Shown: positions 4,221 to 43,400, counted from the stretch's first letter. The stretch: 64,000 nucleotides of DNA from Epithemia pelagica (GCA_946965045.2 OX337239.1:1612001-1676000); one strand, 5' to 3'. A program made the numbers and translations. The notes: generated from the letters alone by a model not told the origin.

Positions 4221-5228
4221 ATGAATCTTTTGACGCGCAATTTTTTCCTGGGATACCTGTCGAGCGCTGCTTTCATCGATACTAAGGTTATCACACCACC
4301 GACTCTCACGCTACCCGACAAGCGACACAAAGAACAACCACAAACAGCCTCGGAGACGTTGCTGACGTTGCGTCATGAGTGGGCCCAAGATATACGACGC
4401 ACCACCACTGCTTATCTGCAAGAGGGAAAATACCAGGATGAAACCGAATCTGTGACACCAGCATCTCTTGTTCGCTTAGCCTTTCACGATGCTACGACTG
4501 GAAACCCGAATGGATCCATTCGCTTCGAACTCGCATGGTCCGAAAATCGAGCCCTGTCACGGCCTCTCTCGGTGGTCCAGTCCATTTATGAAGCGCATCC
4601 ATTTCCCAATGACAACAATGCATCGTCGTTGGCCGACACGATCGCTTTGGTGGCAGTTCAAGCCATTGAATACATGGGAGGACCTCACATTCCGATCCAA
4701 CTTGGTCGCCTTGATGCCAGTCAGGCGGATCCATATTATTTAGAAACACCACTTTCTATGCAAACCAAACAATCCAGAGTGACCAAAACACTACCAGAGG
4801 CAGGACTGGATTCAGACGGCTTGCGTTTGTACTTTGGACGTCTTCGTTTGACAGAAGCCGAGTGGGTGGCCTTGTCAGGGATCCATGGACTGGGTCGACA
4901 TGTGTCCTTGCTAGGAATGGAAAAGGCATGTCTCAAGAATCTTACAAGAGACTGTTTGGAGCAAGCACCGGTGTTACTCCCGTTTGTCACGTCTTCGGAA
5001 GGTAAATTTTCCAACGACTACTTTACGGCCTTGTTGCAATGGAATGCACAGCGAGTACAGCTTGGACAAGTTGCGTTCATACCTACCGATGTAGCCATGG
5101 TGGTGGATCCTGGTTTACGGCGATATGTGCACGCGTATGCCAACAACCCGTCCTTGTATAGGAAACATTTTACGCGAGCCATGCAAAAACTCTTGGATCA
5201 GCAAGCTACTACGATCGAACGATTTTGA
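4221..5228 (+). CDS. Class I heme peroxidase, ascorbate peroxidase-related (APX-R/APX6-like)
   Basis: Distal RLAFHD, NGSI-FE, SLADTIAL, GRLDA, proximal ALSGIHGLG, FSNDYF and PTDVAM. The first in-frame ATG after the retroelement is 4221; the true start is uncertain. Confidence 0.85.
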   Translation: MNLLTRNFFLGYLSSAAFIDTKVITPPTLTLPDKRHKEQPQTASETLLTLRHEWAQDIRRTTTAYLQEGKYQDETESVTPASLVRLAFHDATTGNPNGSIRFELAWSENRALSRPLSVVQSIYEAHPFPNDNNASSLADTIALVAVQAIEYMGGPHIPIQLGRLDASQADPYYLETPLSMQTKQSRVTKTLPEAGLDSDGLRLYFGRLRLTEAEWVALSGIHGLGRHVSLLGMEKACLKNLTRDCLEQAPVLLPFVTSSEGKFSNDYFTALLQWNAQRVQLGQVAFIPTDVAMVVDPGLRRYVHAYANNPSLYRKHFTRAMQKLLDQQATTIERF

Positions 5229-10774: not shown

Positions 10775-12157
10775 CTATCCAAACAAAATCATTCCGACAC
10801 TGAGGTTTCGTTGAACATTTCGTTTGGAGGGTTCCAAACAAGCTTGCTCTCCAAAACAAGCCATGCCCAAAATGGGCACGGTTCCGACCTTGGACGACAA
10901 TTCGTTGTTGGTCAAGCCGGTATTCAAATTGTCTCCCACGGCAATGGCCATGCCACCACAATAAATGAGCATGCCCGCCTTGGGAGATGACGACGACGAC
11001 AATTGGGTTTGAGCCGTGTCGTAGGCGGCCGTCAAGGCCGTGGCATAGCCAGTTTCGGGTCCATTGCCACTGTCCATGACAGTCAAGGTGGACCCTTGTG
11101 GAATGGGCGCAAAAAAGTCCACGTAGGTACGGTCGCCCTCCGCTGGTTGCAAGCCACTAAAGGCGGCACAATGCGCCGTAATCGCTTCGGCCTGATTGGG
11201 ACCTTGGACGGCAATGGGTTTTTTTGCCGTTTGGGGCAAGACCAAACCCCCCGATTCATATTGTTCTTGCACGGCCTCGCCCAACCAGTCTCGGACCCAG
11301 TCCACCGCCGGTGCGTTGTTGATTTCATAGACACGTCGTTGTCCGTCCGTTTTCGTGGCAATACAGGTTTGACTAGTGGGTGTATAGGGTCCCATCATGG
11401 AGGCGCCAAAGGCTACGTTGGATCCAATGGCCACTAGGGCAATGCCCGTACTCGACACGGTTTCGGCGGACCACACATTCCAGGCACCCGACAAGTCATT
11501 GTCGGCCGCTGTGCCACCAAACACGGGAATGCCGGGAAAGGCTGCTTCCAAAGCTTGCAAGGTTCCTTCTTCGGCACCAGGTGTGGTGCTCATAAAAATG
11601 GCTTGTGGCGGTTCCGTCGTCGTGGCAAGTTTGGCGTGAAGGTCGGCCGCCGCCTCGACGGCATTGCCTTGCGCGTTGAACACGGATACAAAATCGTTGA
11701 CATTGTTCGTAGACAAGAGCAAACACGCCACGGCCGCGGGCAAGGCACCCGTTCCTGGTTTCAAAATAGCACCACTGGATGTCAAGCCATGTATCAATGT
11801 AGAAGGAGGCAAGGCTTGAGCGAGGGCTTGTCGAACTTGCGTAATATCTCGATGCACCGTGGCCGAACAAAAGGCCATAATGGGTGGACTACTACTGGTT
11901 TCGCCCAAACCCTCCAGGGCTTGAGAGACTGCTTCTTGGACGGCGGTCGGAGTATCCGAAGCAGTACTACTGCCGTATCCAACGCTTTGAATCGCCATGA
12001 GGAGTTGTGATGAGGAGGACGTGGACGACGAAAAAGAAGAGGACGGTTTGGGGAGGAAGGTGGTGGAACCCAGAAATAATGAGCCTAGCGAAAAGGCACC
12101 AACCCCAGCCCCAGGACTCGACAGCAAACAAGGGACAAACCACAAGAGCGGAATCAT
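10775..12157 (-). CDS. FIST (FIST_N + FIST_C) domain protein with a probable bipartite plastid-targeting presequence
   Basis: FIST-like motifs: IHGLTSSG, PVFGGTAADN, AKTDG-RRVYEINNAPA, IYCGG and GMACFGEQ. A hydrophobic N-terminus ends in GA-F and is followed by a Ser-rich transit-like stretch. Intronless. Confidence 0.8.
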   Translation of the reverse strand: MIPLLWFVPCLLSSPGAGVGAFSLGSLFLGSTTFLPKPSSSFSSSTSSSSQLLMAIQSVGYGSSTASDTPTAVQEAVSQALEGLGETSSSPPIMAFCSATVHRDITQVRQALAQALPPSTLIHGLTSSGAILKPGTGALPAAVACLLLSTNNVNDFVSVFNAQGNAVEAAADLHAKLATTTEPPQAIFMSTTPGAEEGTLQALEAAFPGIPVFGGTAADNDLSGAWNVWSAETVSSTGIALVAIGSNVAFGASMMGPYTPTSQTCIATKTDGQRRVYEINNAPAVDWVRDWLGEAVQEQYESGGLVLPQTAKKPIAVQGPNQAEAITAHCAAFSGLQPAEGDRTYVDFFAPIPQGSTLTVMDSGNGPETGYATALTAAYDTAQTQLSSSSSPKAGMLIYCGGMAIAVGDNLNTGLTNNELSSKVGTVPILGMACFGEQACLEPSKRNVQRNLSVGMILFG

Positions 12158-19756: not shown

Positions 19757-20992
19757 TTAACTGTAAATGGACTCCGGGACTCGATATGCAGTTTTCTTGC
19801 TACGATGCTGCTCATCCGATGCTATCTTCGGGTTCGAAGCTATCTTCTCTCGGGCTCGGTAATAGATTGGAACCTTACCCATTTCCAACAAACGAGAAAA
19901 TAGCTGACTATTCTTGTCCACAAGTGAGAGGGTTTCACATGCCTCAGTCGTACCATTCCCACCAATCACAGCGATACCATTCGACATGGACACCATGCTA
20001 CAATAATGCCTCCACTCTTTCAAGTTGGGAAGCTCCCAACACATGTGTTTATCGGCATCTAGAACTTGCACAGAATTCGAATCTTCACCGGGGTTCGATC
20101 CTCCTGCAACGACAAGACAGGAACCCACTTGGACTACAGCATGTCCCACTCGAGGCGACTTCAGGCTAAGATGCTCGTGGATCGTCCAGGACTTGGACAA
20201 TGGGAGCACAGATTCAGCACTATTCGCTGTATCGTCCAACAACTGGTCAAATTCCATATGTTCGACTGAGCTCAGGGCATGCCGTCTATTGTTCCCACCA
20301 ACAGCATATATCCGTTGACTTATCACAGCCATTCCAAAATGCCTTCGAGGTTTTCCCAACGATGGTCCAGATGTGACAGTACATGAATTTCCACATGCCG
20401 TGTCGAGAATGTCAACCGATGATACCTCATCCAATTCATTGGTCCCACCTGCCACTACAATAAATCTGTCGTGTACAACAGCGGCGGCACATCCCTCTCG
20501 TTTTGTAGACAAACGACAGTTCAACATTGTCCATCCATTCGCGTTGATGGTGGAAGATGATGATGAATGCTGAAACAACTCCCAAACATGGATAAGTTCA
20601 ATCGAATCCAAGCCAGATGCGCGGTTGCGTCCACCAATGGCGTAAACAGCGCCATTGCATACCACCGAAACATGACCATTTCGGCTTTCTTGCATAGGGG
20701 GTCCTTGTTGCCACTTCGCACGATCACCACGTAATAGAATAACTGAATTTGTTATGGAGAAAGTTTCCTGCAAAACTCCTCCCATAATCACCACAGTCTC
20801 GTCGTGTTTCGAGACTGGATGATTCACAACAACCGACGTGTGCAGACCCCGATTCCCTCCCACAAGTGGAGGCCAAGTGGATGGCCTCCAAATAGGTTCT
20901 ACTTTGTCTTTGTCATGGCTAAACGCCAGTCGAGACAAGAGCGCTTGTTCTTGGATCTTCATATATGGAAATATTGCGATTTCTTTGTACAA
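19757..20992 (-). CDS. Kelch-repeat beta-propeller protein; 5' region unresolved
   Basis: Repeated Kelch motifs: VVIMGG, VYAIGG, IVVAGG, IYAVGG, LVVAGG and IAVIGG with W/R spacing. Broken same-strand ORFs upstream (21062-21809) may be a decayed N-terminal part. Confidence 0.8.
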   Translation of the reverse strand: MYKEIAIFPYMKIQEQALLSRLAFSHDKDKVEPIWRPSTWPPLVGGNRGLHTSVVVNHPVSKHDETVVIMGGVLQETFSITNSVILLRGDRAKWQQGPPMQESRNGHVSVVCNGAVYAIGGRNRASGLDSIELIHVWELFQHSSSSSTINANGWTMLNCRLSTKREGCAAAVVHDRFIVVAGGTNELDEVSSVDILDTACGNSCTVTSGPSLGKPRRHFGMAVISQRIYAVGGNNRRHALSSVEHMEFDQLLDDTANSAESVLPLSKSWTIHEHLSLKSPRVGHAVVQVGSCLVVAGGSNPGEDSNSVQVLDADKHMCWELPNLKEWRHYCSMVSMSNGIAVIGGNGTTEACETLSLVDKNSQLFSRLLEMGKVPIYYRAREKIASNPKIASDEQHRSKKTAYRVPESIYS

Positions 20993-22278
20993 ATGACGTT
21001 CTCGGAGCGATCGACTGTTGTTTTGATGAGACGTTCTCTTTATCCAACTCTAGAGCCACCGTTATTTTCTGAGTGAAAGCACAGATGTTACATCAACGAA
21101 TGACATGTGTGCTGGGTGCGGTTCGCCCGGTGGAGCACGTTTTGATGCGTAGGACATCCTTTTACGTGGTTTGGTTTCCTTCTCGATCTTACAGCAATTT
21201 GATGACGAGAGATCCACGCTCGTTCTTGATCGAACACATATGAGGTACATGTCAACCTGTCGTTCATCAGAGGGTACGTGAACGAGCATGCGTCGAAGAG
21301 TACGTTCGTGAGAACAACAGAGGTGCTGCACTCTACGCTCGATCCAAACCAAGCGAGAAGCGTGGAACTCCCATATCCTAACTTGCGTTGCGAGCTTGGA
21401 ACTCCCATATCCGAATTTGCGAGCCGAAAGGAATTGTTTTGTGAAAGATCTGTAAATCCCTGCGAAAACAGAGAAGCTCTCTTGATTGGCAGTAAAACCT
21501 CGGACATCTTTTTTTACACTGGAGACGACGGAACTTAATGCTTTTGAGTACCAAGCGTGACTCGTCAATTGTCTTTGATCCCTCGATTGTTGAATGAGCG
21601 ACTTATCCTTGAAATCTTCTTCCCGATTGCCCCAGACAGTTTGCATCCAGCTCGGATGCTTCCACGCCAACCAAAATGATGGAAAGTGGCCGTTGGCCGT
21701 CTTTGGTGTTGACAGTCACGAATATTTGAATGATGTCATGCAGCATCGCGATCCATGGGTCCGTGAAGGAGAACACATTCTTCAATACCTCATGCTCACG
21801 TATGATCAAATAAATGGGACCAGTTACAAGTTGATCAGTACCAGCGAGAATAGCCCAGCATCCATGTGATCCTCCTCATCGGACTAGACGCGTCTCGGAA
21901 GTCGGATTAGTGTCCCAGTTGCAAAACTTATCCTATCTATCCAGCAAGATGAGCCACAGAGGAGTCATTTTCCATTCATTGCGTCTTGAAAGAACCTGAA
22001 ACGACACGTGAGTCTCCATACCATGGTCGATCTCTTATCAGTCGATCGAATAAAAGATATTGCCTCTCTATATTGCGACGAGATGCTACGAAATGGTTTG
22101 TCGCGCTTAATGTTTGTGGACTCTTGTGGTTCCGTACATGGAGGACGAGGCCATGATTGGTCGCTGACAATCCAAACGACACTGTGTTCCTCAGTCTCGA
22201 GAGGTGGTTCAGATGGAATTGCAATAGTTTGTTCTTGTCGTTTGTGCTGTCAACAAAGAGAGAGCTCCAGGATTATTA

Positions 22279-23577
22279 TTATTCTTGTTTCGGTCGTTCC
22301 ATATCTTTGGGGGAAGCATGACGAGCCTCCGAGCCTTGTCGTTTGTGTGGGTCTGTTGGCTTGCCTTGAGTTGGTTGTTGTTGTTGTTGTTGCGCCAAAA
22401 TGGCGAGATACAAGCCGGTAAAGACGGTTCCAATGGCCATCCATTGCACGGGGGTAAATCTATGTCCAAAGGTTTGCACCGACACGAGAATGGTGACAAA
22501 TTTTCGAGTCGTGGTAATGGTCGTGGTGACAATGGAATTGTACCACACCACGGTCAAAAAGATAAAGATTTGACCACAGGCCACGGCTCCATTAATCAGG
22601 ACCAATTTGTACCACTGCGGTGGAGTAGGATTGGTGTTGTCATTCTCATCCTTCGACGACGACAAGGACCAACCACATTGAAACCATCCCTGTTGCAATT
22701 GACCATTGAACCAAGTCCAGGGAAGAAGGAACAGGAGGGCATAGAGGTTGACATACAACATGGTTTCGACAGCGTTGGGAGTTCGTTTCAATGGGTTGTT
22801 CTTTAGCAAGTTTTGACAAGAACTCAACACGCCATCCAAGACCAGAGACACGAGGAGTAAAGACAGACCATAAACTTGATCCGTACTGGTTGTGGATGTG
22901 GTGGAGGAAGGATGCACGGTCATGCGACTCCATTGAAAGGCGACAATGCCCGCGGAGATCAACAAGGCGGCCATCCATTGGGTGCGCGAATACAACTTGT
23001 GTTCGATAAACTGTCCCACCAGCATGAGGGGAATGAGTTTGCAGGATTTTCCCAAGACTGCCACTGGATAGGACACGTAGGGTACAGCTTCGTTGCTACA
23101 AACCATGGCACCGACATAACATCCCGCCGTGACAATCAACAAGCCATGATCCAAACCTTGCTTTGCGGTTGTTATTGTTGTTGTTGTTGTTGTTGTTGTC
23201 GTTGAGGAGGACGACGACGAATTGTTGGAGGATGATTTGTTGTTGTTGCTGCTGCTATTCGTGGAAATGGCATTCCACAAGAGGGCAACCAGTGTATTGG
23301 TGATACAGGATGTGACCAAGACAAAGGAGGCACCCAATCGTTCGGATGGATCGGTAAAGAGTCGTTCTTGCAAAATGCCATAGTAGACATAGCTGATACA
23401 AATTCCGGCTGCGCAAAACAAGAGACGACCCCACGACGACCAGCAGGATACAAGCCATGTCGTTATTGAATCCACCAAAGTGGAAGAGGAAGGTTTGGTG
23501 GTCGGAACCTTGGACCACGACGACGACGACATGGACCGTTGGGAAGGAGATTTGGGTGGGGACGACGACTCACACAT
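22279..23577 (-). CDS. SLC35B1: UAA-family nucleotide-sugar/ATP transporter, SLC35B1/HUT1/UTR1-like
   Basis: YYGILQE, VSYPVAVLGKSCKLIP, LVLDG, GQIFIF, TTITTTRKFVTILVS and FGH..QW, with about 10 hydrophobic segments. Confidence 0.88.
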   Translation of the reverse strand: MCESSSPPKSPSQRSMSSSSWSKVPTTKPSSSTLVDSITTWLVSCWSSWGRLLFCAAGICISYVYYGILQERLFTDPSERLGASFVLVTSCITNTLVALLWNAISTNSSSNNNKSSSNNSSSSSSTTTTTTTTTITTAKQGLDHGLLIVTAGCYVGAMVCSNEAVPYVSYPVAVLGKSCKLIPLMLVGQFIEHKLYSRTQWMAALLISAGIVAFQWSRMTVHPSSTTSTTSTDQVYGLSLLLVSLVLDGVLSSCQNLLKNNPLKRTPNAVETMLYVNLYALLFLLPWTWFNGQLQQGWFQCGWSLSSSKDENDNTNPTPPQWYKLVLINGAVACGQIFIFLTVVWYNSIVTTTITTTRKFVTILVSVQTFGHRFTPVQWMAIGTVFTGLYLAILAQQQQQQPTQGKPTDPHKRQGSEARHASPKDMERPKQE

Positions 23578-23792
23578 GTGTGGAGGTATTGGTGGGTCAC
23601 TTTAATTCGTGGTGGCAGTGGACTTTAAAAGAACACAATGGCAACAATGATTCGAACCGAGAGAATCTGTTTTGTTTCTCAACTTATGTGTTGTGTACGT
23701 CGGTCGGAGGGAAGACTCAATCCCATGGTGGTCGAATTTCTGACGTCCGATGCGTGAGAATCTCGCACCTCCTGTTTGGTCGCGTTTGTATT

Positions 23793-23800
23793 CCACGTGT
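23793..23800. promoter_or_regulatory. CCACGTG(T) motif about 216 bp upstream of the SLC35B1-like start
   Basis: Sequence seen directly. A regulatory role is inferred only from its recurrence upstream of the other ER-folding genes. Confidence 0.25.
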
Positions 23801-24155
23801 CATACTGTCCTGATTCGGAACCATAAATGCGACTGACCACCTTTCCGGATAACTTCAGCGTGTTCTTTGAGTTCGGAGCAGGTGGTTGCGCCCTCCCAAA
23901 GACACACGTCCCAACCACAAGCACAAGTGCGTTCTTCCACCTTTCTTTCTTCCACTTTTTCGTCGCCAATAATGGAAAGGACGAGAGACGAGAGCGAAGA
24001 GCACAACACGAGTCTCTGGTCATAATCATCAACTGCAGAGTCGACACACACATCATCAGCCATCCCAAGCATTGAGGTCCTTGTCTTGATTGGCCCTCCT
24101 TCTCTCTCTCAGCGCAAGCATTCTTTTGAACGAAACAAGAGAGTTTGCCACCAAA

Positions 24156-25130
24156 ATGGTTTGGCAATCCAGAGCGGCGGCGGCCGCCATGTTGGTGTGG
24201 ATGGCTTCCATGGTCCACCCGATGGTGGACGCCTGGACAATGAACCATGTTCCAGGAGGAGGACGACGACGACAGGGTCCTTATTCGGAGGATGGTTCCC
24301 GACTTGCCGCCGCAGCTAGTTTGGCCATGGACTCCCCGACCATGGTCCCTCCATCAAGTATTCGTAGTACGACTGCGAATCGTTCGACTCACAAGGAGAG
24401 GGTACCAGCCACAACCAAGTCATCCTCCACCATGAACGTATTGCCGTTGGAACCATCTCAACAAGCATCGTTGCCCGAGTCGTCGTCGTCGAGACGGTCT
24501 CTTTCCACACCCATTCATACGTTTGAAACCATGCCCGAGATGTTGACCTTTTTGCAAGACTTGCCCACTTTGCAGCAAGACGACGATCAAGAGCAGTGGT
24601 ATGTCGTCAAGTACTTTGTCTCGTATTGCAAAGTGTGTCAACGATCGGCCTTGAATTACAAAAAGATTGCCTTGGAGTATGCCGCAGCCAATGACGATAA
24701 CGACAAGGACAAGGAACCAAGTACAGTGGTTGGTCACCGCAATCGAGTGCACTTTGTGCGAGCCGATGCCACCTCGTGGACGGGAGTATCCTCCTCCTCT
24801 GAATCATCCTCCTCCTCCCAGCAACAACAAAAGTGGTTGAAACAATTGGGCATTACCAAATTTCCCTTTGTGCAAGTCTATCGGGGACGGACGGGGGCCT
24901 GTGTCGCCTCCTTTTCCACGGGTGGGACATCGTACATGTTTGCCCGACGAGTTCGTGAAACCTTGCAGGCCATTGTAACGCGCAGTCCGCAAGAATGGAA
25001 GGACTTTGAACAGAACTGCCAATCGGCCATGGACGAGAATGCGCAAGTGCGACGTCAAGTGTTGCAAGACTATTATTCGGTGCAACAACATTCACCCGAA
25101 ACAGACGAAGAACAAGAGGTTATGCCATGA
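24156..25130 (+). CDS. Thioredoxin-like protein (CKVC), probable bipartite plastid presequence
   Basis: YVVKYFVSYCKVCQ, VHFVRADA and LGITKFPFVQVY (cis-Pro loop). The N-terminal hydrophobic segment ends DA-W and is followed by a Ser/Arg-rich stretch. Confidence 0.8.
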   Translation: MVWQSRAAAAAMLVWMASMVHPMVDAWTMNHVPGGGRRRQGPYSEDGSRLAAAASLAMDSPTMVPPSSIRSTTANRSTHKERVPATTKSSSTMNVLPLEPSQQASLPESSSSRRSLSTPIHTFETMPEMLTFLQDLPTLQQDDDQEQWYVVKYFVSYCKVCQRSALNYKKIALEYAAANDDNDKDKEPSTVVGHRNRVHFVRADATSWTGVSSSSESSSSSQQQQKWLKQLGITKFPFVQVYRGRTGACVASFSTGGTSYMFARRVRETLQAIVTRSPQEWKDFEQNCQSAMDENAQVRRQVLQDYYSVQQHSPETDEEQEVMP

Positions 25131-25838
25131 ACCGCTTCTCGAAAACACATGCAACGAGCAACAGGGTACCCATTTTTGTCCATTTGCGCCACCAAGGAAT
25201 ACTCTCGCAGTGGACGCAAGGTAGCAGTGTGAATCTTGGACCAACCAACATTTGCTTCAACGCCAAGAAGTAATGTGTCGATGGAGTGCTTGCCTTGTTT
25301 TGTGCGAACCACCGAAGACAATGTCAGAGAACGACAATCAAGGGGAGTCTCATTGACCTTTATCGCCAACTACTGGGTGGTTCGCGTACAACGGCCAACG
25401 TTCGAGTTCTCACTTGAAGTCATCCTAGGAAAATATTTAGACTGACATTTCATCCCTCACGGCTCATCTTTCGTATGGTATGTTCTGCTGCTAGTCCACA
25501 GTGTGGTGTTCCAACCGGATGCGCGTCTTTCTCATTTGTATAAGTGTCTATGCAAATGAAATTCTATGCAGCGAATACAAGGAATAAAAAATGAAAAACG
25601 CCATCATGAGCCAACCAACACTATTTTCGACAATACAAGTCAACCTTCATTCATGGTGGTGAGCAAGAACCTCGACCATCGATCAAGCTTAGACTTGTTC
25701 TATCATGCCGGAACTTAGTTATACGAGCTAAATTGGAAGTTATATTAGATCTCTGGGTTTGTCCAATCCATGGTTCTCCGTGCAATAAGTACGGATCCGG
25801 TTCAGGAAGCTCGATTGGCCAAAGATGGTTCGTTGTTT

Positions 25839-25934
25839 GTTGAATCTTATTCGTGAGTTGTTCCTCAAAGACAAGGCCTCTTCAAAGCCAAAGCCGCCTT
25901 GTCTTTGAGGAACAACGAACGGATAAGATTCAAC
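25839..25934. repeat. Intergenic inverted repeat: 39-bp arms (36/39 matched) with an 18-nt loop
   Basis: GTTGAATCTTATTCGTGAGTTGTTCCTCAAAGACAAGGC (25839-25877) pairs with GCCTTGTCTTTGAGGAACAACGAACGGATAAGATTCAAC (25896-25934). Confidence 0.9.
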
Positions 25935-26643
25935 AGGTCGTCCCTGTGCCAACCAGTAGCTTTCTTCAAAGGCTTCTTTATACTATTATCTCCAGACAAG
26001 CTGATTCCTCCAAGCTTTGCTGGGACATAATCAATCGCATTTCCAGATTTCGGGGAACTCTTCTTGGTCATTGATTCCTTTGAAATACTCTAACGTTTGC
26101 AAAGTACTTCCCAGCCCTGCTCAGCGGTCGATGTTCCAGCTTCTTCAAACGATCTTTCAGAGTTCGCCGGAACAGCAAGCTTGAGGGAAACAAAATGTTT
26201 CGAAAGAACATGACTTTGATGGCATTCTTGCGTGAGTCGTTGTTGCCGTCTGTAAGGAAAGCAGTGAAGGCCTTTCGGGCTGTCTCATCTATAATATATG
26301 TTGCTGTCTGAATTTCGTTGTTGTGGACCAGGGGACAACGGAATCTTGATGACTTTTGTTGTCTTGGGTTCTACGCCAAGATCTACCAAGGAAGAAAATA
26401 CACCTGCCATTTCCATGACAGAGACTGAGAATGTACCAGAGGAAAGCATCCTGGAGGACGATGTCCAAGACGATCACGACGCCGTCGCGAGTGAGTGACT
26501 GAGGAACTTCCCAATGGCTCGGGTCGATGGCCCTGCTGCAGTTCTATTTTTTTAAAACATAGCGGCTTCATCATTGTTGTCGTGTCTCTTTTATTCCCGT
26601 GAGCCAACCGTAACCGTACGGGCGGGAACGGGACCTCATACCA

Positions 26644-26651
26644 CCACGTGG
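26644..26651. promoter_or_regulatory. Palindromic CCACGTGG motif upstream of the Ero1 fusion gene
   Basis: Sequence seen directly; function inferred only. Confidence 0.3.
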
Positions 26652-26735
26652 CGTTTGGAAGAAGTCAAGTACTACCAAGTGTCTACCGAGGCATGACTTT
26701 CATAAATTCAATAAAAGGTTTACTTTATATTACCG

Positions 26736-29700
26736 ATGAGTTGTGAAGTTCAAACGTGTGTGGACGCTTGGCGCGAAAACCACACCACCGATACCGATGA
26801 CTGCACACCGCACTGCACCCATCCGACACAAATCGAAGAATTCGCCCAAGCGACAACTCAACTGCCATTTCGAAACGGTTCTCTCGTGTCGAAGCACCAT
26901 CGCTCAACTGAAAAGCAAACTCGGTGGCACTCTGAGAAACTGCAAGAGAAAACCATTTGTTCCATGACACTGTCAGGCATGCCGCAAACTGCACCAAGAA
27001 CCCGCAAACGACAACGACGACGACATGTTGCCAGGAGACCAACGTCTTGTCGGTCAGGGTGTTTGTCGTCGTCCTCCTCCTCCTTTTCGGCTGTCCTCTT
27101 GTTGGTGCTGGTACTCGTGTGCACGATCCTGCTCACAGACTCTCCGGTTGTCCATGCCCAACCACAACCACAACGACGACCCTTGGAATCTTCCTCCTCT
27201 TCGGTGTCTCCTGCAGCGGGTCCGATTGATGAATTGATTGTCACGTGCAATATGGAAGATTTGGAACAAGCCAATGATTCTCAATTGTATACCATTTTGC
27301 ACGATTTGAAACAAACGGCCTTTTTTCGAACCTTTCGAGTCGACTTGTCGCACAAGTGTCCCCTTCGATCGTGGAGTACTAGTAGTAGTACTGACAAGGA
27401 AGCTTTCCAGGAAACGAACGACGACGACGACCAGGGTGACAAGGACGACGACGAAGAAGAGGAATTTGATTGCCCCAGCAATGCCTTTGCCGACTTGGAC
27501 GAGGAAGCCGAACCCTTGTGTACAGTCCAACCAGAAGAGGAACAGGACGACGAGGATCCAGCCTCGTTCTTGTCGTCTCATGCGCTCTTTACTCTTTCGC
27601 AAGATGGGTTTCAGTCCAAGGAACAACAACAAACTTATACCTGGGATCGACATGTCGATACCGTCACCACAGCAGCGTCCTCGCAAACACAACCTGGAGA
27701 GGACGACAGGACCACGGACAAGACAGAGTCTGGTCCATGGACCGACCCACAAACCACATCCACCACCACATCCACTACCACTCCTTCGGATTGTGACCAA
27801 GATCCTGTCCCACATTTGTTGCCACATGATTTTTGGTTGGATTTGTGCACTCGTGTCCGCAACGACGATCCTACCGTTGTCAATTTGAATTTGAATCCGG
27901 AACGCAACACGGGATACAATGGCACTCATATTTGGACGGCCATTTACGAAGAAAATTGTTGGGCCATTGCACCCACCACGGACGACGACGACCAAACAAA
28001 GAAGAATGTGTGTTTGGAAGAGCGCGTCTTGTATCGACTCTTGTCCGGCTTGCATGCCAGTACCACCTTGAGTATTGCCCAAAATTATTATCCACCCAGC
28101 AAACGCAAGGGACGGGTCGATTGGGAACCCAATCCATCCTACTTTTATCAAAAATTCAGTCCTCATCCCGACCATGTGCGCAATTTGCATTTTTCCTACG
28201 TGGTCTTGTTACGCGCCTTGACCAAGGCCGCCTCCTATTTGTATCCCTACGAAATTCGAACCGGTGATGTCGTTCAAGATGAAATGGCGACCGTCTTGCT
28301 GCGACGATTGTTGGATTCCAGTATTTTGCAATCCTGTTCCAGTGTCTTTTCCGCCTTTGATGAATCTCTCTTGTTTGCCTCCGAACCATCTTCTGGAACT
28401 CATCATGCAAATGACTTTTCCTTGCAACACAATTTCAAGGATGTCTTTTTTAATATTTCCAGTATTTTGGATTGTGTCCAATGTCAACAATGCAAATTGC
28501 ATGGCAAATTGGCCATGTTGGGGTACGGGACGGCGCTCAAAATTTTGTTTTCCCCCACCAATGTCTTGGAGGATTTGACCCGCAATGAAATTGTCGCCTT
28601 GATTAATACCTTGGCCAAATTTTCGGAATCCATTCGACAGGTTCGGGAATTGACACACTTGTATTTACTCGAACAACAACAACAAGAACATGCCCCACAA
28701 CAAGCCTGGCAATCGACAACGACGACAAGTACAAGTACCACAGCCTCGTCGTCGTCGTCGTCGGAACCATCCGCCATTACCTCGATTGCCACAGTCGATG
28801 TTGCCATTGGTGCCATTGCGAGCTTGGCTCGACAAGGCATGATTTCCGCCGAACGAGAAGCCCAATTGGTTCAATTGGCCTTGAGACGTCATGCCGATCT
28901 TCTCGTCTTGGCACGACATTATGGAACGGCGGATGTCGCCAAATTTGGACACTTGATCCAGTTTCTGGACAGTACTGGCAGTAGTAGTACTAGTACAACC
29001 CACGAGGCATCGCCCGACGCCATTGTCATTGGAAGTGGCTTGGCGGGCATGGCAGCAACCTTGAGAATTTTGGATCGAGGGGGGAGTGTCATTTTGCTCG
29101 AGAAGGAACATTTGTTGGGTGGCAATTCCAACAAGGCCAGTTCCGGAATCAATGCGTGTTGCCCCACCAATGAAACAACAATATCTAGTAAGGATCATGA
29201 TTCGGTCGATTTGTTTCGCAACGACACGACACGATCGGCTGGATCACTGGCTCGTCCCGACTTGATTGACGTGTTGGTCCAACACTCTGCTTCGGCCGTA
29301 TCCTGGTTGCGAGATCGAGTTGGTGTCGACTTGTCGTTGTTGGCTCAATTGGGTGGTCATTCCGCTCGACGAACCCATCGTCCTAGCAATGGCATGGCCG
29401 GAGCTGAAATTATCTATGGCATGCAAAAGGCAATCAAGGCTTACATCAAGAGTGGCAAGGTTACCATTCTGACCGACTCGAAAGTTGTCTCCTTACTCAC
29501 AGAGGACGGAACGGGTGGTGGTGATCGTCCTCGTCGTCTGATTGGGGTCGAATATGTCCAACTGGATGAAACGAACAATGAGGACGACGACAAGCGCAGT
29601 ACGAAGCAATTGTATGCGAACCATGTCATTTTGGCCACGGGTGGATTTGCCGCCGATCGAAGTGCCGGATCGTACTTGTCCCAGTATCGGCCCGAATTGT

Positions 29701-30992
29701 TAAAAATGCCCACCACGGCCGGTGCCTTTTCGACGGGCGATGGGATTGCCTTGGCCACTGCCCTGGGAGCCACCCCCATTGATATGGACAAGGTTCAAGT
29801 GCATCCGACTGGGTGGATCGATCCCGCCGAGCCGGACAAGAAGAGCAAAATATTGGCGGCTGAATTGATGCGTGGAGTGGGAGGATTGCTGCTGAATGCC
29901 AGCGGCCATCGATTTTGCAATGAATTGGGCACGCGCGCCTATGTCACCAATGCCATGTTGTCCCACAATGATGACTATGCCCGAACCTCGCAATGGAATA
30001 TTGAGGCCGACATTCCCACCTTTTCTCTCGTCTTGTCGTCTTCGGCCGCCCTCGATGGGAAGAAACATGTCGATTTGTACACACACAAGGGACTCTTGAC
30101 CAAACTGGAGGGACTTAAGGCCTTGGCCAAATGGCTCAATCTACCGCAAACGGTTGTGAAAGAAACCCTGAGACGGTATCAAGAGGCAGCTCAATCGGGG
30201 GAGGACCAATACGGCAAAACCACCTTTCGAGGCGTTCCGGGAACGACTGTCAATGGGTCATCCCTACCATTGGACTCGGAAGTCTTTTATGCCGGAACTG
30301 TGACACCCGTATTGCATTATTGCATGGGTGGTATTACCATTGATACCCAAGGTCATGTCTTGGACGAATCCGGCCAGGTGATTCCTGGTCTCATGGCCGC
30401 CGGTGAAGTCACGGGAGGAGTCCATGGAGCCAATCGATTGGCGGGCAATTCCTTGTTGGAATGCACAGTCTATGGAAGTATTGTGGGACAAGGCATTCCA
30501 ATCCAATCCAGACAAGGCTCCTCATCGACCTTGGCCGCGCCAACGTTGCTCGTGTCGTCCATTGACGGGGAATCCCAACCACCCCCCACGGACCGGATCA
30601 TTTCACCCTCCGAATTGGCCCAACACAATACTCCTACCGATTGTTGGGTGGCCATTCATGGGAAGGTATACAATTTGACCAGCTTTGCCGAAGAGCATCC
30701 GGCGGGTCCAGCATCCATTCATGTATTGGCTGGTCAAGATGGATCAGAGGCCTTTGAAGCGGTGCACAACCAAGGGATTTTGGAAGAAGTCGAAGAAGAT
30801 TTGGTGGGTATCTTGGGGGAAGATGACGACGAGAACGAGACGGACACATTCAATAACGGTGAGGATTCCCCAAACGAGGAGGATTTGGCTGCGACGGGTG
30901 ACAGTGGGGAGCCGACAGTGGACAACAAGAGGCCGCAGGAGCAAGACGAACCTCCGAAACGTGGAATATTAGCCGCATTTGGATGGAAATAA
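26736..30992 (+). CDS. ERO1: Ero1 - soluble fumarate reductase (Osm1/Frd1 type) - cytochrome b5 fusion protein; likely start 26964 or 26979
   Basis: Single open frame. Signal-like segment AVLLLVLVLVCTILL..VHA. Ero1 motifs: NPERNTGY, IWTAIYEENC, CLEERVLYRLLSGLHAS, FFNISSILDCVQCQQCKLHGKL and GTALKILF. FAD_binding_2 motifs: [51 protein letters not shown] and [16 protein letters not shown]. Cytochrome b5 motifs: HNTPTDCWVAIHGKVYNLT, HPAG and AFEAVH. Confidence 0.95.
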   Translation: MSCEVQTCVDAWRENHTTDTDDCTPHCTHPTQIEEFAQATTQLPFRNGSLVSKHHRSTEKQTRWHSEKLQEKTICSMTLSGMPQTAPRTRKRQRRRHVARRPTSCRSGCLSSSSSSFSAVLLLVLVLVCTILLTDSPVVHAQPQPQRRPLESSSSSVSPAAGPIDELIVTCNMEDLEQANDSQLYTILHDLKQTAFFRTFRVDLSHKCPLRSWSTSSSTDKEAFQETNDDDDQGDKDDDEEEEFDCPSNAFADLDEEAEPLCTVQPEEEQDDEDPASFLSSHALFTLSQDGFQSKEQQQTYTWDRHVDTVTTAASSQTQPGEDDRTTDKTESGPWTDPQTTSTTTSTTTPSDCDQDPVPHLLPHDFWLDLCTRVRNDDPTVVNLNLNPERNTGYNGTHIWTAIYEENCWAIAPTTDDDDQTKKNVCLEERVLYRLLSGLHASTTLSIAQNYYPPSKRKGRVDWEPNPSYFYQKFSPHPDHVRNLHFSYVVLLRALTKAASYLYPYEIRTGDVVQDEMATVLLRRLLDSSILQSCSSVFSAFDESLLFASEPSSGTHHANDFSLQHNFKDVFFNISSILDCVQCQQCKLHGKLAMLGYGTALKILFSPTNVLEDLTRNEIVALINTLAKFSESIRQVRELTHLYLLEQQQQEHAPQQAWQSTTTTSTSTTASSSSSSEPSAITSIATVDVAIGAIASLARQGMISAEREAQLVQLALRRHADLLVLARHYGTADVAKFGHLIQFLDSTGSSSTSTTHEASPDAIVIGSGLAGMAATLRILDRGGSVILLEKEHLLGGNSNKASSGINACCPTNETTISSKDHDSVDLFRNDTTRSAGSLARPDLIDVLVQHSASAVSWLRDRVGVDLSLLAQLGGHSARRTHRPSNGMAGAEIIYGMQKAIKAYIKSGKVTILTDSKVVSLLTEDGTGGGDRPRRLIGVEYVQLDETNNEDDDKRSTKQLYANHVILATGGFAADRSAGSYLSQYRPELLKMPTTAGAFSTGDGIALATALGATPIDMDKVQVHPTGWIDPAEPDKKSKILAAELMRGVGGLLLNASGHRFCNELGTRAYVTNAMLSHNDDYARTSQWNIEADIPTFSLVLSSSAALDGKKHVDLYTHKGLLTKLEGLKALAKWLNLPQTVVKETLRRYQEAAQSGEDQYGKTTFRGVPGTTVNGSSLPLDSEVFYAGTVTPVLHYCMGGITIDTQGHVLDESGQVIPGLMAAGEVTGGVHGANRLAGNSLLECTVYGSIVGQGIPIQSRQGSSSTLAAPTLLVSSIDGESQPPPTDRIISPSELAQHNTPTDCWVAIHGKVYNLTSFAEEHPAGPASIHVLAGQDGSEAFEAVHNQGILEEVEEDLVGILGEDDDENETDTFNNGEDSPNEEDLAATGDSGEPTVDNKRPQEQDEPPKRGILAAFGWK

Positions 30993-31858
30993 CAAGAAGG
31001 ACCACTCGGTCATGGTCCAGGAACACAACGAATCAAATTTGTGACACTAACTCCCGGAGCGCCCCTTTGATTGATAGAGATTGTGAATGTGAGTTGGTGC
31101 TTCCCGCAAACCAATGTATTAGTGTTAAGAGACAAAACCGCCTTCTAGAAACTTTATCAACGAATTGCTGTTCACTGCTCCTATATACTCCTAGGAGTAC
31201 ATGAGGACCGACATGTGATGGGACGACGGTAAGGTTAGCTTTAGTCACGCTCGATGGGGGTAGATCGTCCTTCGTACGGATTGTCGATGGGTCCCGCTGC
31301 GACATCCCGAAAAGCGAACGCCATAAACCGAACGCAATGTCACAAGAAAAAGATCCGAATCCGAGAAATCCGAGGACGAGAAGCAGCCACCGCACCAACG
31401 AAAGGAAACAGGAACCAACGCGTAGACATTTGCATTATTTCATGACAAAAGTCACGAGGTATCAAAGAACAACAAGAAGCTGGTTTGGAGTGTTCTCGTT
31501 GTCATCCTTCTCCCCCTGCTTGTCGCGGACTTGGTTCCGAAGCAACAGCCACTCCTTTCCATCCACGTTCCAGAATAAACGCATTCTCCAACACCACTTC
31601 AAACATTGCCTGCCATTTCTTCCAACGGCTCTTTGGATAATCATTGCCACTCCCCACATCCGATCCAGTTGCGGCCACCAACGACACTTGCATCCATCCC
31701 TTATTTCAAGCGTCCACAACGGTGTTTCTTCTCATTCCTCATCATCATCATCGCCGCCGTCGTCGTCGTTATCATTTCCCTTGGTGAATTCTTCGTCGAC
31801 TTGTTCCGCAAGAAATCACAAAACACTCCAGAAAACCACCAGTACCAATACCGGTATC

Positions 31859-33688
31859 ATGTCCTCCACTCCACTGTTGGATACAACAAAATTTGATGCC
31901 ATTGTGATTGGTAGCGGCTTGGCCGGAATGGCCACAGCGTTGACGATTGCGGATCGAGGAGGGTCCGTACTCATATTGGAAAAGGAGCCCACGATTGGTG
32001 GCAATTCACAAAAGGCCAGTTCTGGAATCAATGCCGCACCGCCTACAACAGCACCCCCAACGGACACGAACGTTGACATTGAAGATTCTACCGACTTGTT
32101 TTATCAGGATACGGTAACGTCCGCTGGTTCTACCTTGGCTCGTCCCGAGTTGATTGCCCGTTTGGTACAAGACAGTGCGGCCGCAGTGGACTGGTTGCAA
32201 ACACGAGTGGGAATGGACTTGTCGGCCACAACGCAATTGGGAGGCCATTCCGCCCGTCGGACACATCGACCCGCTTCGGCCACCACCATTGGACGGGACC
32301 TCGTACAAGGCTTGCAGCAGGCATTGCAAGAGTATTCTACCGATAACTCCAATATGGACCAGAGTTCCAATTCGCCATCACCACAACACCAACACCAACA
32401 CCAACACCAACAACCAAAGGGTAAGGTGACCATTTGGACCCGTTGTCAAGTCACAAATTTGCTGTGGCAGCAACAACAGGAAGATGAATCATCACAAGAC
32501 AGTGGCCGTGTGATTGGAGTGGAATGCATTCGCGACGAAGCGAGTAACGACGATAAGGATAACACGTCGGACAAACCACACCAAGAAAAGACGGCCACTC
32601 CACAACGACTGTATTGCAATCATCATTGTGGCCACGGGTGGTTTGCGGGAGGTCCTTCGTCCTCCTTTTTGAGCCAACATCGACCCGACTTGAAGGATTG
32701 GCCCACCACGGCAGGTGCCTTTTCCACCGGTGATGGCTTGACCTTGGGCATGGCCGTGGGAGGCTATTGCGTCGATATGGACCAAGTTCAAATTCACCCC
32801 ACCGCCTTTGTCGATCCAGTCCACCCACAGGCACGGAGCAAAATTTTGGCAGCCGAATTGTTGCGGGGAGTGGGAGGCCTCTTGCTCAATGCGGACGGAC
32901 AACGCTTTTGCAATGAATTGGGATCACGCCAGTATATTGTACAACAACAGTTACAGGAGTATTCCCATGATGACCCCAACAACCATGGCAACAACAAAAT
33001 CCCTGACCACACTACGTCCTCTTCCTCCTTGTCCACCACCACTGGTACGCTCCCGTCACCCTTTTACTTGGTCTTGACAGAAGCGGCCGCACAAGAAGCA
33101 CCGACTCATGTCAAGTTTTATACATTCAAGGGTTTGTTGACCAAAGTGCAAGGCCTACAAGCTTTGGCCGACTATCTGCAATTGCCCTCTGTATCCACGC
33201 TCCAACAAACCTTGGTCGAGTATCAAGAGGCTGCTGCTGCCGCAGAATCCACGGGACCCTCCTCCACTCCGACTGTACAAGATCCGTTTGGCAAGACGGT
33301 CTTTCGGGGAGTACCTACGGTTCGGCCCAACAACGACCAACACAATGATAGTCTCACGTTTTACGTTGGTCAAGTCACACCGGCCTTGCATTATTGCATG
33401 GATGGTTTGGCTATGGATGCTCAAGGTCGTGTGTTGCGACGACGACAACAACAACAACAACAACGTTCCTCCACGGACCAGCTGGACAAACCAAACTCCA
33501 ATTCACATGAGGATTCAGAATGGATTCCGGGATTGTATGCTGTGGGAGAAGTCACGGGAGGAGTCCATGGTGCCAATCGATTGGCCGGCAATTCCTTGTT
33601 GGAATGTACAGTCTTTGGTCGACTGGTGGGCCAATCTATTCCGATTCCCAATGCGGCCGATCCAAGCACACAAGAGGCAAGGTCCTAG
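31859..33688 (+). CDS. Stand-alone soluble fumarate reductase paralog with damaged conserved motifs (possible pseudogene)
   Basis: [48 protein letters not shown] and [16 protein letters not shown] are present. VILATGGF is scrambled to HCGHGWF and HYCMGG reads HYCMDG. The frame is open upstream to 31337. Confidence 0.8.
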
Positions 33689-34170
33689 ACATGAGAGCAA
33701 TTCTCCATTTCGAAAGTATGCTTTCATGAGTGGAGTTTCTTGTTTTGCTACGGCATGTCCAGTGCAAAACCCTAGGAGTAGTATGGGACACATGCATTTC
33801 TTTACCGGCACAATCTATCACCACCACCAGTTTTGCTAGAGAAGAAACTTTCATTTTCATCAACGGGCTTCAATTGTAAATAGACAACTTGTCTATCCCC
33901 GTTTTTGTGACGGGATAGGAGTGGGTGCCTTGGTCATGGTTATTTTGGAGTATTATGTTTGTGGTTGGGGTATGCATAGTCTATGTACTCCTAAGGTTAA
34001 GCCGCATCCTCTTTTTACGACGATGACCCATGAGCGACTAAAATGGATGAGCACAAAGAGGGAACCAAGTGCGACTGAATGGAACCGCCTGTCTTCGTCG
34101 GTTGCTAAAAAATGAGTCCATCTTTCCATCCAACAACTCATTGAATAAGTTCTATCTGTTGCCGACGGCA

Positions 34171-37827
<3,657 letters not shown>

Positions 37828-40488: not shown

Positions 40489-43400
40489 CTATAGCTCATC
40501 GTCCGTTTCCTTGTCTTCCGTAGATTCTTCGGTACTGCTAGGTTCCCCGTCTTCGGTGGTGTTGGTGGCGTTTTCGGCATTGGTGGCATTTTCCGCGTTG
40601 GTGGTATTGGCATCCTCTTCGGTGGTCGTCGTTGTTGTTGTTTTGGCTGGTTTCGGTTTGGGCTTTTTACTCAAGCGCAACAGTAACGACTCCAAAGGTT
40701 TCAGTTTCTCGGCCAACTCAGTACTGAGATAGGCAGGATCTTCGTGGGCAGCCTTGGAACTTTGGGCTTCCTCCAACTCGGTCATATTCCCTCGAACCGT
40801 ATCAATGCGGTCCGTCACCTTTTGACGTTCTTCGTCCGTGATATGGGGCATGGTCGTCGTCCATTTTTCCAACAGTTCCTCCGCTTGGTTCAAGCGTTGT
40901 TCCACTGTTTTCACCATTTCCGGTCGTGCCGTCTTTTCCCGTTGTCGTAACAAAATCTTTTCAAAAGGCTCGGACAATTCCAAAAACTTGTCTTCCAAGG
41001 TCGCCAAGTCGGCCGTGTAACCATCCTCTTCCAACCAGAGTTCCGTTTCGGAGGCAACCGTTTGGCAGGCCTCACGTTGCTTGTCCGTGGAGACGGTGGA
41101 AAGTTCCTCTTCGTCGTCAATCAACTTGTTCTTGACCATAAACATGTAACTCTCCACCTTGTTCTTGGCTTCTTCTAACATTATTCGCTCCTTGTCTGCC
41201 TTATCCATGGCCTCAAGTTTGGCTTGGGACGCGGCCATGAGAGATTCCCAATGCGGTTGAACCTTGCCCTCGTAATAGGTATTCACCTTGAGACTACGCT
41301 TGAGCAATCGCTTCTTTTCCTGTGGGACAAAGGCAGGTCCATGACGAGGATGCACACCAAACAACTATAGGTGAGCTCTGTATGATAAGTACATGGGACA
41401 CGACAACCAAAAACATGAACAACCAAACTCTTCACTTTTACAACGTACCTTCTCCACTTTGATCGTCTTCTTTTTCTTTTTCTTTTTCTCGGGGATAGCC
41501 TCTTCCGTACTATTGCCAGCCTCAGTCTCATTGGCATCCGTCTCGTTTGACTCAGTTTCGGATTCCTCGGATTCCTCCTTGTCCGCAGTCTCGTCCTTGG
41601 CATCTTCTGTTGTTTCTGACGACTCTGTCTCGGTAGCATTGTCGTCCTTATCTTCTTCTTCGTCGTCCACCTCCACTTCTTCTTCCACGGTGTACGTCTC
41701 TTCCATGCTGGCCTCGGCCTTGACCAAGGACGTAATGCCGGAAGCAGACAACTCAAATTGCAAAGAGACCTTTGGTTTGCTTTCCAATCCTCGTTCTTGC
41801 ATCTCCTTGGAGAATTCTTCCACGCCACTGATTTCAAATCGTTCCAACGACAAATCAGATCCCGGCGCATGCAATTCCGACTCGACATAGTCCAACGAAC
41901 AGTGGACATCTTGGTCATGCGTAAAGGCAATCGTCTTTTTCACGCCCATCTTACTATTGGCCTTGAACAAGGTGGCCTTCTTGTTCCACACTTCGTCCTC
42001 ACCTTCCTTCTTGGCTGGTTCGGTATAGGGTTGGAATTTGCGGTCCCATCCCGTCGCTTCCGTTTCGTCTTTTGTTTCCTCCGTGGCAATGGACGGTCCG
42101 AGATTGTGCAGGGTAATTTGTTGTGCCAGTGGGGCAATATCCGTCATGCCGACATGGCGAACCCGAAAGGCGGTACTCACATTGGCACCCGCAAAGGCGG
42201 CACCCAACGCCATGGATTCATCCGCATTCATGTGCAATCCCAATTCCACTGGTTCCAGGGCTGCCGCCAATTTGGTTTGAACCGAAGGAACACGCATGCC
42301 TCCGCCCAACAATTCGACACCGGTCAAATTGGAGGTGGTCATTTCGGCCATTTCCAAGGCACGCAAGACAGGTTGTACCGCTCGTTCGAGCAAGGGTGCC
42401 GTCATGGTTTCCAAATCGTCCCGCGTCAAGGTGAATTTCAACGACACATCGTCGTGCAAGGCATCGAGTTGTATGGGATATTCATTGTTGGCCGAGAGAA
42501 CATGTTTGGCCTTGTTGGCCGCCAACCGTAACTTGGTCATGGGACGTTGAACCTGGCGAATATCTTTGGAGTCATCACCAGTCTTTTCTCTCCATACTTT
42601 GTTGAATTTGTCCGCCATAAAGTCGACCAAGAACTTATCCCATTCGAGGCCACCCAGTGTCGTATCAAACGCCTTGGCCAAGACTTGGAGAGCCGGTGTT
42701 GGTTTGGGTTTGGCAAAGCCCGATTTATGGTCGTACGAAAAGAATTTGACAATCGACACCTGCAAGGACGACGCTCCCATGTTGTAAAAGAGAATGACTT
42801 GTTCTTCGTCAAAGTTCTTGTCCGTCGCATAATGCAAGGCGGCCGCCGTGACTTCATCAATCAATCCCAATACATTCAAATTGGCCAACTTGGCGGCATC
42901 GAGCAAGGCCCGTCGTTCCACCTGTGTGTAAAAGGAGGGGACGGTCAAGACCAGGTCCGTGGGGGGAGGAATGACCGACCCTGCCTCCTTGGCATACTCT
43001 ACACTAATGTCCACGGCATGATACAACACCATGGCCACCAACTCCTCCGGCGTAAACTCTCCCGCTTTGGGTACCGTCAAGGTCAATCCCTTGCGGGTTT
43101 CATTGTAAGTTCCCTGCACTGGAAAGTGACGATCCACCATTGCCTAAAGAGATGGGGTCAAAACACACAAGGACAAGAAACCAATACGAGAAATGTGCTT
43201 AGATGATGAGAAAAAGCGTCCACAAGGCTGTCACAGAAATGCCATGTCAAGGACATCCAGTCCACTCTCCGCTTTGCCGAACAAGTCTCCTCCCGTCGGC
43301 CATGGCCGGCAGTCATTCGTTTCTGTCTTACCTGCACACTGGGATGCGATTCGGCTCGTCCCAACAGTTCGGCCATACTGGTGGGTGTCAAATGCGCTTT

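Follow-up and report, generated by a model that had tools for sequence, protein, structure and literature searches.

An Ero1-fumarate reductase-cytochrome b5 fusion in diatoms and distant eukaryotes: a candidate single-chain route from thiols to fumarate

Can one gene hold the whole path by which the electrons of disulfide formation reach fumarate? The question is raised by an uninterrupted open reading frame (ORF; positions 26736-30992, plus strand, 1418 codons plus stop) in a 64,000-nucleotide stretch of Epithemia pelagica DNA (GCA_946965045.2, OX337239.1:1612001-1676000), called the window below. The ORF encodes, in this order, an Ero1 domain, a linker, a fumarate reductase, and a cytochrome b5 (b5) domain. 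In the textbook scheme, oxidative folding hands its electrons to oxygen, with one H2O2 formed for each disulfide. Judging from sequence and from comparison with known enzymes, we consider that the fusion would act as a single-chain thiol-to-fumarate oxidoreductase, a covalent version of the yeast Ero1-Osm1 pair, and we give this reading a probability of roughly 0.6.

The initial annotation of the window, made from the sequence alone, had described a single frame with all three domains, and Pfam indeed matches ERO1, FAD_binding_2, and Cyt-b5 within this ORF (Table 1). Since all three matches are strong and the matches to solved structures agree with them, the observation is real and far beyond chance. 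The motif positions given at that stage are exact (CxxCxxC, 28473-28493; HPT, 29802-29810; ELMRG, 29862-29876; HYCMGG, 30315-30332; ANRL, 30429-30440), and the motif scan also placed two b5 motifs (HPAG, 30696-30707; AVH, 30759-30767). The frame had been taken to begin at 26736. It is one uninterrupted three-domain frame, but its first 76 codons are probably untranslated, because a 96%-identical relative (P0001) has an in-frame stop upstream of the Met77 equivalent, its gene model begins at that Met77 equivalent, and residues 1-76 have no counterpart in the alignment of 120 homologues. Translation probably starts at Met77 or Met82. The contig of this relative (L001; ENA ERZ21939226, ctg1358l) is fully collinear with window positions 20979-37149 at 96.1% DNA identity over 16 kb, intergenic sequence included, and comes from a second haplotype or strain of the window's source or else from a sister species. 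The next closest protein, from Epithemia clementina, is 65% identical.

A whole-protein search gave 317 matches. The best 120 of these, to which our statements on three-domain homologues apply, each contain ERO1, FAD_binding_2, and Cyt-b5; among them are proteins of named pennate and centric diatoms as well as complete MMETSP transcripts. These transcripts hold all three domains, which supports the single frame described in the initial annotation. The spanning transcripts also bear on whether the frame might be an artefact, either two adjacent genes read as one ORF or a protein that is always cut into an Ero1 part and a reductase part. Public gene models do break up or shorten the gene in two species, Nitzschia inconspicua (P0127) and Phaeodactylum (B7FVF5), and the protein could be open to proteolysis in the low-complexity segments flanking the linker. 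In the DNA of both species, however, we find one uninterrupted three-domain ORF, and the linker between the domains is itself a conserved folded domain. We therefore regard an artefact or obligatory separation of the products as barely credible.

For distant lineages we searched all cluster representatives and followed this with name look-ups and Pfam scans. Beyond the diatoms, the three-domain protein occurs in a cluster including Ostreococcus lucimarinus, in the labyrinthulid Aplanochytrium, in Chromera velia, in the diplonemids Diplonema and Namystynia, in the chytrid Batrachochytrium salamandrivorans, and in Bolidomonas. Emiliania huxleyi and Triparma are represented by partial entries only (P0143 and P0149), with ERO1 and reductase and without b5. 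Together the distant fusions span six eukaryotic supergroups, with bolidophytes, haptophytes, green picoplankton, and alveolates among the carriers. The rationale first offered for the fusion, survival of benthic diatoms in dark anoxia, is not supported by this distribution, which takes in planktonic centric diatoms as well as Emiliania and the other lineages just named. Carriers of the fusion are common in oxygenated surface water, and the fusion is therefore no special adaptation of benthic diatoms to dark anoxia, a rationale that is too narrow. It could be active all the time (for example, to avoid peroxide), at night, or under hypoxia.

The Ero1 module covers positions 2-354 of the 354-position PF04137 profile, and its matches among solved structures are human Ero1-alpha (1e-38) and yeast Ero1p (1e-35; PDB sequence search). 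In our family alignment of 121 fusions, the three CxxCxxC cysteines are invariant (121/121), nine other cysteines are fully or almost invariant, and the conserved blocks around the flavin that are shared with human Ero1-alpha are invariant too. The module had been called a full Ero1 domain. This stands as far as the profile and the active-site motif are concerned, but the Cx4C shuttle motif is missing, and in this respect the module falls short of a canonical Ero1. This motif, expected after CP(F)W, is absent from the window protein and from 68 of the 69 Ero1 sequences that have His after the active site (His-type), and is present in 14 out of 16 that have the canonical Trp at this place (Trp-type; survey of 99 Ero1 matches). 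The fused Ero1 modules of every lineage examined lack Cx4C, carry a long acidic loop, and have the invariant His in place of Trp. Two cysteines of the loop, Cys246 and Cys262, are invariant in 121/121 fusions with a spacing of mostly 14-16 residues (range, 10-31), and may be the shuttle pair. A neighbor-joining tree separates His-type from Trp-type Ero1 in 82 of 100 resamplings. By these alignments, the fused module is a separate Ero1 subfamily with a noncanonical shuttle loop and a Trp-to-His exchange.

Some further observations concern the same sequences. The Cys...Cys loop module (C-G-G...AEP-C, between Cys208 and Cys262) occurs as a tandem pair, with low-complexity sequence between the copies, in 60 of the 121 diatom fusions aligned; these are chiefly from centric species. 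In the tree, an Ero1 labeled as coming from a fern (P0203, 'Adiantum nelumboides') is near-identical to that of the basidiomycete yeast Meira miltonrushii (P0199), and is probably a fungal contamination of the fern assembly. Two apparent stand-alone Ero1 proteins were rejected: The 565-residue model P0127 of Nitzschia inconspicua lies inside a three-domain ORF of 1177 residues (L002, 7962-11495), and the 'complete' MMETSP Ero1 P0172 is a truncated form, 99.8% identical to the fusion P0072, that ends before the active site.

His-type Ero1 does exist unfused, without a reductase, in Diacronema lutheri (P0167), Cladocopium (P0153), and Luapelamoeba hula (P0178). For Diacronema lutheri (L004, 8001-9638), the absence of a downstream reductase is genuine, since the next gene lies only 55 bp away on the opposite strand. 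The protein ends with the same helical domain that follows Ero1 in the fusions, and the linker thus belongs with the Ero1 half and may serve for docking. The initial annotation had noted a small helical linker; this stretch of ~70 residues is conserved in diatoms and in most of the distant fusions, and it folds confidently in a model made with AlphaFold2 (AF2). We found no significant relative of the linker in Pfam, in PDB sequence searches with the single sequence and with a profile, or in a PDB fold search.

The reductase module is closest to yeast Osm1 among solved structures, both by sequence (5GLG, 9e-79; PDB sequence search) and by fold (5GLG again as the best PDB match of a 1200-residue AF2 model; Foldseek E 2.6e-32, template modeling score [TM] 0.83 normalized to the target). 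Fumarate reduction by Osm1 needs H281, E301, R304, R326, H435, and R477 (PMC6242907). These align to H1023, E1043, R1046, R1067, H1194, and R1234 of the window protein and are invariant in 121/121 fusions; with HPT, ELMRG, HYCMGG, and ANRL all in place, the catalytic integrity claimed earlier for this domain is upheld. The closest relatives of the domain, Osm1 and the Shewanella flavocytochrome c3 (Fcc3), are enzymes with noncovalent flavin adenine dinucleotide (FAD), which would be consistent with the loss of the SdhA-type covalent-FAD histidine suggested by the initial annotation. One could suppose that the domain acts on another unsaturated acid, as urocanate, acrylate, and methacrylate reductases do, given that the FAD_binding_2 family spans several substrate specificities and that urocanate reductase ranks only slightly below Fcc3 in the sequence and fold searches. 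The invariance of all six residues speaks against this, as does the lead of Osm1 in sequence (3e-53 for urocanate reductase) and its fold score, and we consider a substrate other than fumarate very improbable.

Many database entries of the family carry misleading labels ('flavocytochrome c', 'fumarate reductase flavoprotein', 'ERO1-like protein alpha', and 'fumarate reductase (NADH)'). The first is a misnomer, because the 26 cysteines of the ORF include no CxxCH haem c site and no cytochrome c domain is matched by Pfam. The last, on one homolog, has no domain support: Pfam finds neither an ApbE-like N-terminal domain nor a C-terminal cytochrome b5 reductase (NADH) domain, and the fusion is thus not of the trypanosomatid NADH-dependent type.

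What feeds electrons to this reductase? Osm1 has a second pocket, for free flavin, formed by S78, P162, W295, F297, L298, F362, and Y363, and can oxidize free FADH2, flavin mononucleotide (FMN), and riboflavin (PMC6242907). This pocket is not conserved in the fused family: W295 is replaced by S, G, T, or N; F297 by I, V, or T; and F362 by L or H, while P162 falls in a gap and only S78, L298, and Y363 are kept. The loss of the aromatic residues fits a tethered rather than a diffusible electron donor. It therefore bears on the most serious competitor of our reading, in which the two halves are delivered together without being coupled: The reductase-b5 part would work alone, on free reduced flavins or on another luminal donor through b5, Ero1 would still use oxygen, and the fusion would ensure no more than co-targeting and equal amounts. 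The free-flavin activity of Osm1 is in its favor. So are the separate, anchored reductase-b5-b5 paralogues that diatoms also own and that function without a fused Ero1, and the unfused His-type Ero1 of Diacronema, Cladocopium, and Luapelamoeba. But co-targeting alone would hardly require that the fusion and its specific linker be kept across very distant lineages, and in yeast Osm1 and Ero1 interact directly (PMC6242907). Together with the altered pocket, this makes co-delivery without coupling unlikely in our view, and we continue to prefer direct transfer within the chain.

The b5 domain could take part in this transfer. Both haem-ligand histidines, reported from the window sequence and confirmed as His1321 and His1344 within the Pfam match, are present in 120 of the 121 aligned fusions. 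Among solved structures, the domain comes closest to the b5-like domain of flavocytochrome b2 and to a host-derived b5, with matches at 1e-14. Because a low-confidence hinge separates it from the reductase and because of its likeness to the mobile haem domain of that flavocytochrome, the domain is plausible as a one-electron shuttle between the two flavins. The acidic tail that follows it is the least constrained region of the protein when the window is compared with the 96% relative.

Transfer between the modules further requires that they share a compartment. The initial annotation had seen no membrane span between the domains, and the hydropathy profile agrees: The only strong hydrophobic segment of the protein is that of residues 116-134. 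We did consider the moderately hydrophobic residues 680-698 as a span that would place the reductase in the cytosol, and rejected them; they contain a conserved Asp and polar positions, are weakly hydrophobic in most homologs, and form helix 1 of the small amphipathic linker domain. Homologs have signal peptide-like segments directly preceding the Ero1 domain; in Epithemia, a signal peptide is encoded in frame a short way ahead of the annotated start. The lack of a KDEL signal, remarked on at the outset, extends to the whole family, none of whose members has a KDEL-like end. Peptide data come from Phaeodactylum tricornutum, whose N-glycoproteome lists glycopeptides for UniProt B7FVF5, 'Fumarate reductase flavoprotein' (PMC8678454). 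These occur exactly in P0386, a Phaeodactylum-type protein of 1072 residues with all three domains in one continuous ORF (L007, 668-3886). B7FVF5 is an N-terminally truncated model of this fusion, since the offset between the two is a constant 404 residues. Both glycosites are N-x-T: One lies in the reductase domain, aligned with an NDT sequon of the window protein (N829), and the other just after b5. Glycosylation of the reductase and of the tail behind b5 places them in the lumen, with Ero1; the portion of the supplement covered here holds no further fusion peptides. Which side of the membrane each domain occupies had been left as a question, and these glycopeptides favor the answer of a single compartment, by a method that has false positives. 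A protein of the secretory pathway, in the lumen of the endoplasmic reticulum (ER), is the best explanation of these observations.

The chain would then consist of a His-type Ero1 sulfhydryl oxidase, the helical domain, an Osm1-type reductase with putative noncovalent FAD, and a hinge-tethered b5 haem domain. Reduced proteins of the protein disulfide isomerase (PDI) type would hand electrons to the loop cysteines Cys246/Cys262, from which they would pass to the active-site pair Cys583/Cys586 and on to the Ero1 FAD. They would move to the reductase FAD by way of the mobile b5 haem or through direct domain contact, and the reductase FAD would reduce fumarate to succinate. Disulfides would thus be made with fumarate as acceptor, instead of or beside oxygen, and without H2O2. 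Such a reaction would be favorable overall, because fumarate/succinate has a potential well above that of the dithiol/disulfide couple. For the electron path proposed by the initial annotation there is a direct precedent: Yeast Osm1 binds Ero1, accepts electrons from its FAD, and enables disulfide formation without oxygen (Kim et al. 2018, PMC6242907). The part of that path in which b5 is the intermediate carrier goes beyond the precedent. If the yeast partnership matters, a fusion of Ero1 with an Osm1-type reductase is to be expected, gene fusion being a classical genomic signature of such partners. We infer the passage of electrons between the fused modules, the b5 route, the role of the shuttle cysteines, and the conditions that would favor fumarate over oxygen.

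Several points weigh against this reading. The 1200-residue AF2 model is confident within domains but gives no confident inter-domain geometry (predicted TM [pTM] 0.52). Most carriers live in oxygenated water, where the need for an oxygen-free route is not obvious, and the reading requires fumarate in the ER lumen, which points to a supply that nobody has described. A b5 haem usually has a higher potential than a reductase FAD, so that the step through b5 may run energetically uphill, or the domain may have a different partner. Between the window and the 96% relative, the reductase shows 22 nonsynonymous and 12 synonymous changes, although the numbers are small. Finally, the glycosites were scored by PNGase F treatment and deamidation, which gives false positives, and plastid-encoded proteins appear in the same glycoproteome table (PMC8678454).

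In open-licence papers and preprints we found no published description of the fusion, of a diatom Ero1, or of the Phaeodactylum gene, in keeping with the initial annotation, which knew of no characterization. The route from Ero1 to fumarate is already known from yeast; what appears undescribed is a covalent form with b5 and linker, belonging to a distinct branch of Ero1, and how widely this form occurs among eukaryotes. The 2018 yeast work established a fumarate-linked escape route as a weak interaction in one fungus (PMC6242907). That the fusion is conserved, with a linker and an Ero1 subtype of its own, provides independent comparative evidence for an Ero1-to-fumarate route that is real, old, and in wide use. 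The fusion suggests that fumarate, besides oxygen, can serve as an electron sink in protein folding, directs attention to how dicarboxylates enter the lumen, and lends itself, as a natural single chain, to structural work on flavin-haem-flavin transfer. Recognizing it also corrects the annotations that hide its architecture in model diatoms. More speculatively, His-type Ero1, whether fused to a luminal fumarate reductase or paired with one, might be an ancient second branch of the eukaryotic disulfide machinery, dating perhaps from the last eukaryotic common ancestor, and the main, perhaps only, ER oxidase in diatoms and many marine protists. We hold this tentatively, as a possibility that the evidence does not yet favor; if it is true, some of the chief primary producers normally pay for oxidative folding with fumarate, yielding succinate and not hydrogen peroxide.

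The fusion gene is not the only reductase gene in the window. Immediately downstream lies a stand-alone Osm1-like paralogue, whose product is 48% identical to the fused reductase. It is kept in the 96% relative (L001, 10425-12670) and, inverted and intact, in Epithemia clementina (L006, 12250-14394, minus strand). In the window copy, the reading frame is disturbed over a short distance within one conserved FAD motif, and another such motif has Gly replaced by Asp; the copy of the 96% relative is intact at both of these sites, but its ORF breaks off ahead of the dinucleotide-binding motif. The lesions could reflect decay of a duplicate or assembly errors. Elsewhere in diatoms we find the reductase-b5-b5 paralogues (P0416, Nitzschia inconspicua; P0418, Cylindrotheca closterium; P0423, Seminavis robusta; also P0407, P0252, and P0414), which have a basic N-terminus, one hydrophobic anchor, and a tandem b5 pair. 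Their reductase is ~50% identical to the fused one and its predicted orientation is luminal, which points to a wider luminal fumarate-reducing system. At the window edge, positions 1-4100 have a strong negative GC skew (-0.42 to -0.52) and contain an ORF (436-2250) with an RVT_1 domain (1.2e-8); no tandem repeats were found in this segment, which is probably a retroelement remnant. The remaining neighbors are listed in Table 1.

Table 1. Coordinates of the fusion gene, its parts, and neighboring genes in the window (aa, amino acid residues; pLDDT, predicted local distance difference test)
Feature	Position	Strand	Basis or remark
Whole fusion ORF	26736-30992	+	ORF scan and Pfam; collinear with at least 120 homologs of the same architecture
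Probable true start codons, Met77 (26964) and Met82 (26979)	26964-26981	+	Gene model of relative, upstream stop, homolog alignment
Hydrophobic core of signal peptide or signal anchor, aa 116-134, preceded by basic stretch	27081-27137	+	Kyte-Doolittle mean 2.74, sole strong peak in protein
Ero1 domain, His-type subfamily, aa 184-636	27285-28643	+	Pfam PF04137, 1.3e-84
Long acidic, predicted-disordered loop, aa 212-365, with Cys246 and Cys262 (candidate shuttle pair)	27369-27830	+	Alignment; pLDDT <50
CxxCxxC active-site motif (Cys580, Cys583, Cys586), then invariant His589	28473-28493	+	Motif scan; aligns to human Ero1-alpha active site
Conserved linker domain, four to five helices, aa 681-750	28776-28985	+	Alignment; AF2 model, pLDDT 82.5
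Osm1-type soluble fumarate reductase domain, aa 761-1240	29016-30455	+	Pfam PF00890 (FAD_binding_2), 2.9e-78
Low-confidence flexible hinge between reductase and b5, aa 1251-1288	30486-30599	+	pLDDT <50 at model residues 1102-1125
Cytochrome b5 domain, aa 1290-1352, haem ligands His1321 and His1344	30603-30791	+	Pfam PF00173, 3.5e-20
Acidic C-terminal tail, aa 1356-1418	30801-30989	+	Confined to window lineage and closest relatives; most homologs end shortly past b5
Stand-alone Osm1-like fumarate reductase paralogue, without Ero1, b5, or signal peptide; probable start near 31859	31337-33688	+	Pfam PF00890, 6.8e-56
Haem peroxidase	3975-5228	+	Neighboring gene
FIST-domain protein	10775-12157	-	Neighboring gene
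Kelch-repeat protein	19757-20992	-	Neighboring gene
UAA-family nucleotide-sugar transporter	22279-23577	-	Syntenic in close relative
2OG-Fe(II) oxygenase and methyltransferase (ALKBH8-like)	34069-37827	+	Syntenic in close relative and Epithemia
Hsp70-like fragment	41365-43140	-	Neighboring gene

Set beside known systems, the Ero1 half resembles canonical Ero1 (human Ero1-alpha, 3AHQ/3AHR; yeast Ero1p, 1RP4; and fungal, Paramecium/ciliate, and fern-labeled sequences) in its PF04137 fold family, its CxxCxxC motif, and the conserved flavin blocks. Canonical Ero1 has Cx4C directly after CPFW and a Trp after the active site, whereas the fused type has the long acidic loop, two distant cysteines, and His. 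The yeast pair of Ero1p and Osm1 (PMC6242907; 5GLG, 5ZYN) is the nearest counterpart of the whole: The enzyme families and the compartment are the same, the catalytic six are identical, and Osm1 is the best match in sequence and fold. In yeast, however, these are two proteins in weak contact (dissociation constant, Kd, ~200 uM), Osm1 lacks a haem domain and has the aromatic flavin pocket, and Ero1p is canonical; the fusion adds the linker and b5 domains. A parallel exists in the yeast mitochondrial intermembrane space, where electrons pass from the sulfhydryl oxidase of the Erv1/Mia40 system to Osm1 and on to fumarate, as an alternative to oxygen (PMC5638582). There the oxidase family (Erv) and the compartment differ from those of the fusion, and the proteins are separate.

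The reductase-b5 half has two further analogs. Fcc3 (1QJD) is likewise a soluble fumarate reductase with noncovalent FAD, the same catalytic residues, and a haem feed in the same chain; unlike the fusion with its single C-terminal b5, it is a bacterial periplasmic protein with an N-terminal tetrahaem c domain and without a thiol oxidase. Flavocytochrome b2 (yeast L-lactate dehydrogenase, 1FCB) contains the b5-like domain that is the best solved match of the fused b5. A flexible hinge joins this domain to the flavin domain, as in similar enzymes with a hinged b5, and the mobile haem takes single electrons from the flavin. Its flavin domain belongs to another family, binding FMN, and its haem passes electrons outward to cytochrome c, whereas the b5 of the fusion would carry them between two flavins of one chain.

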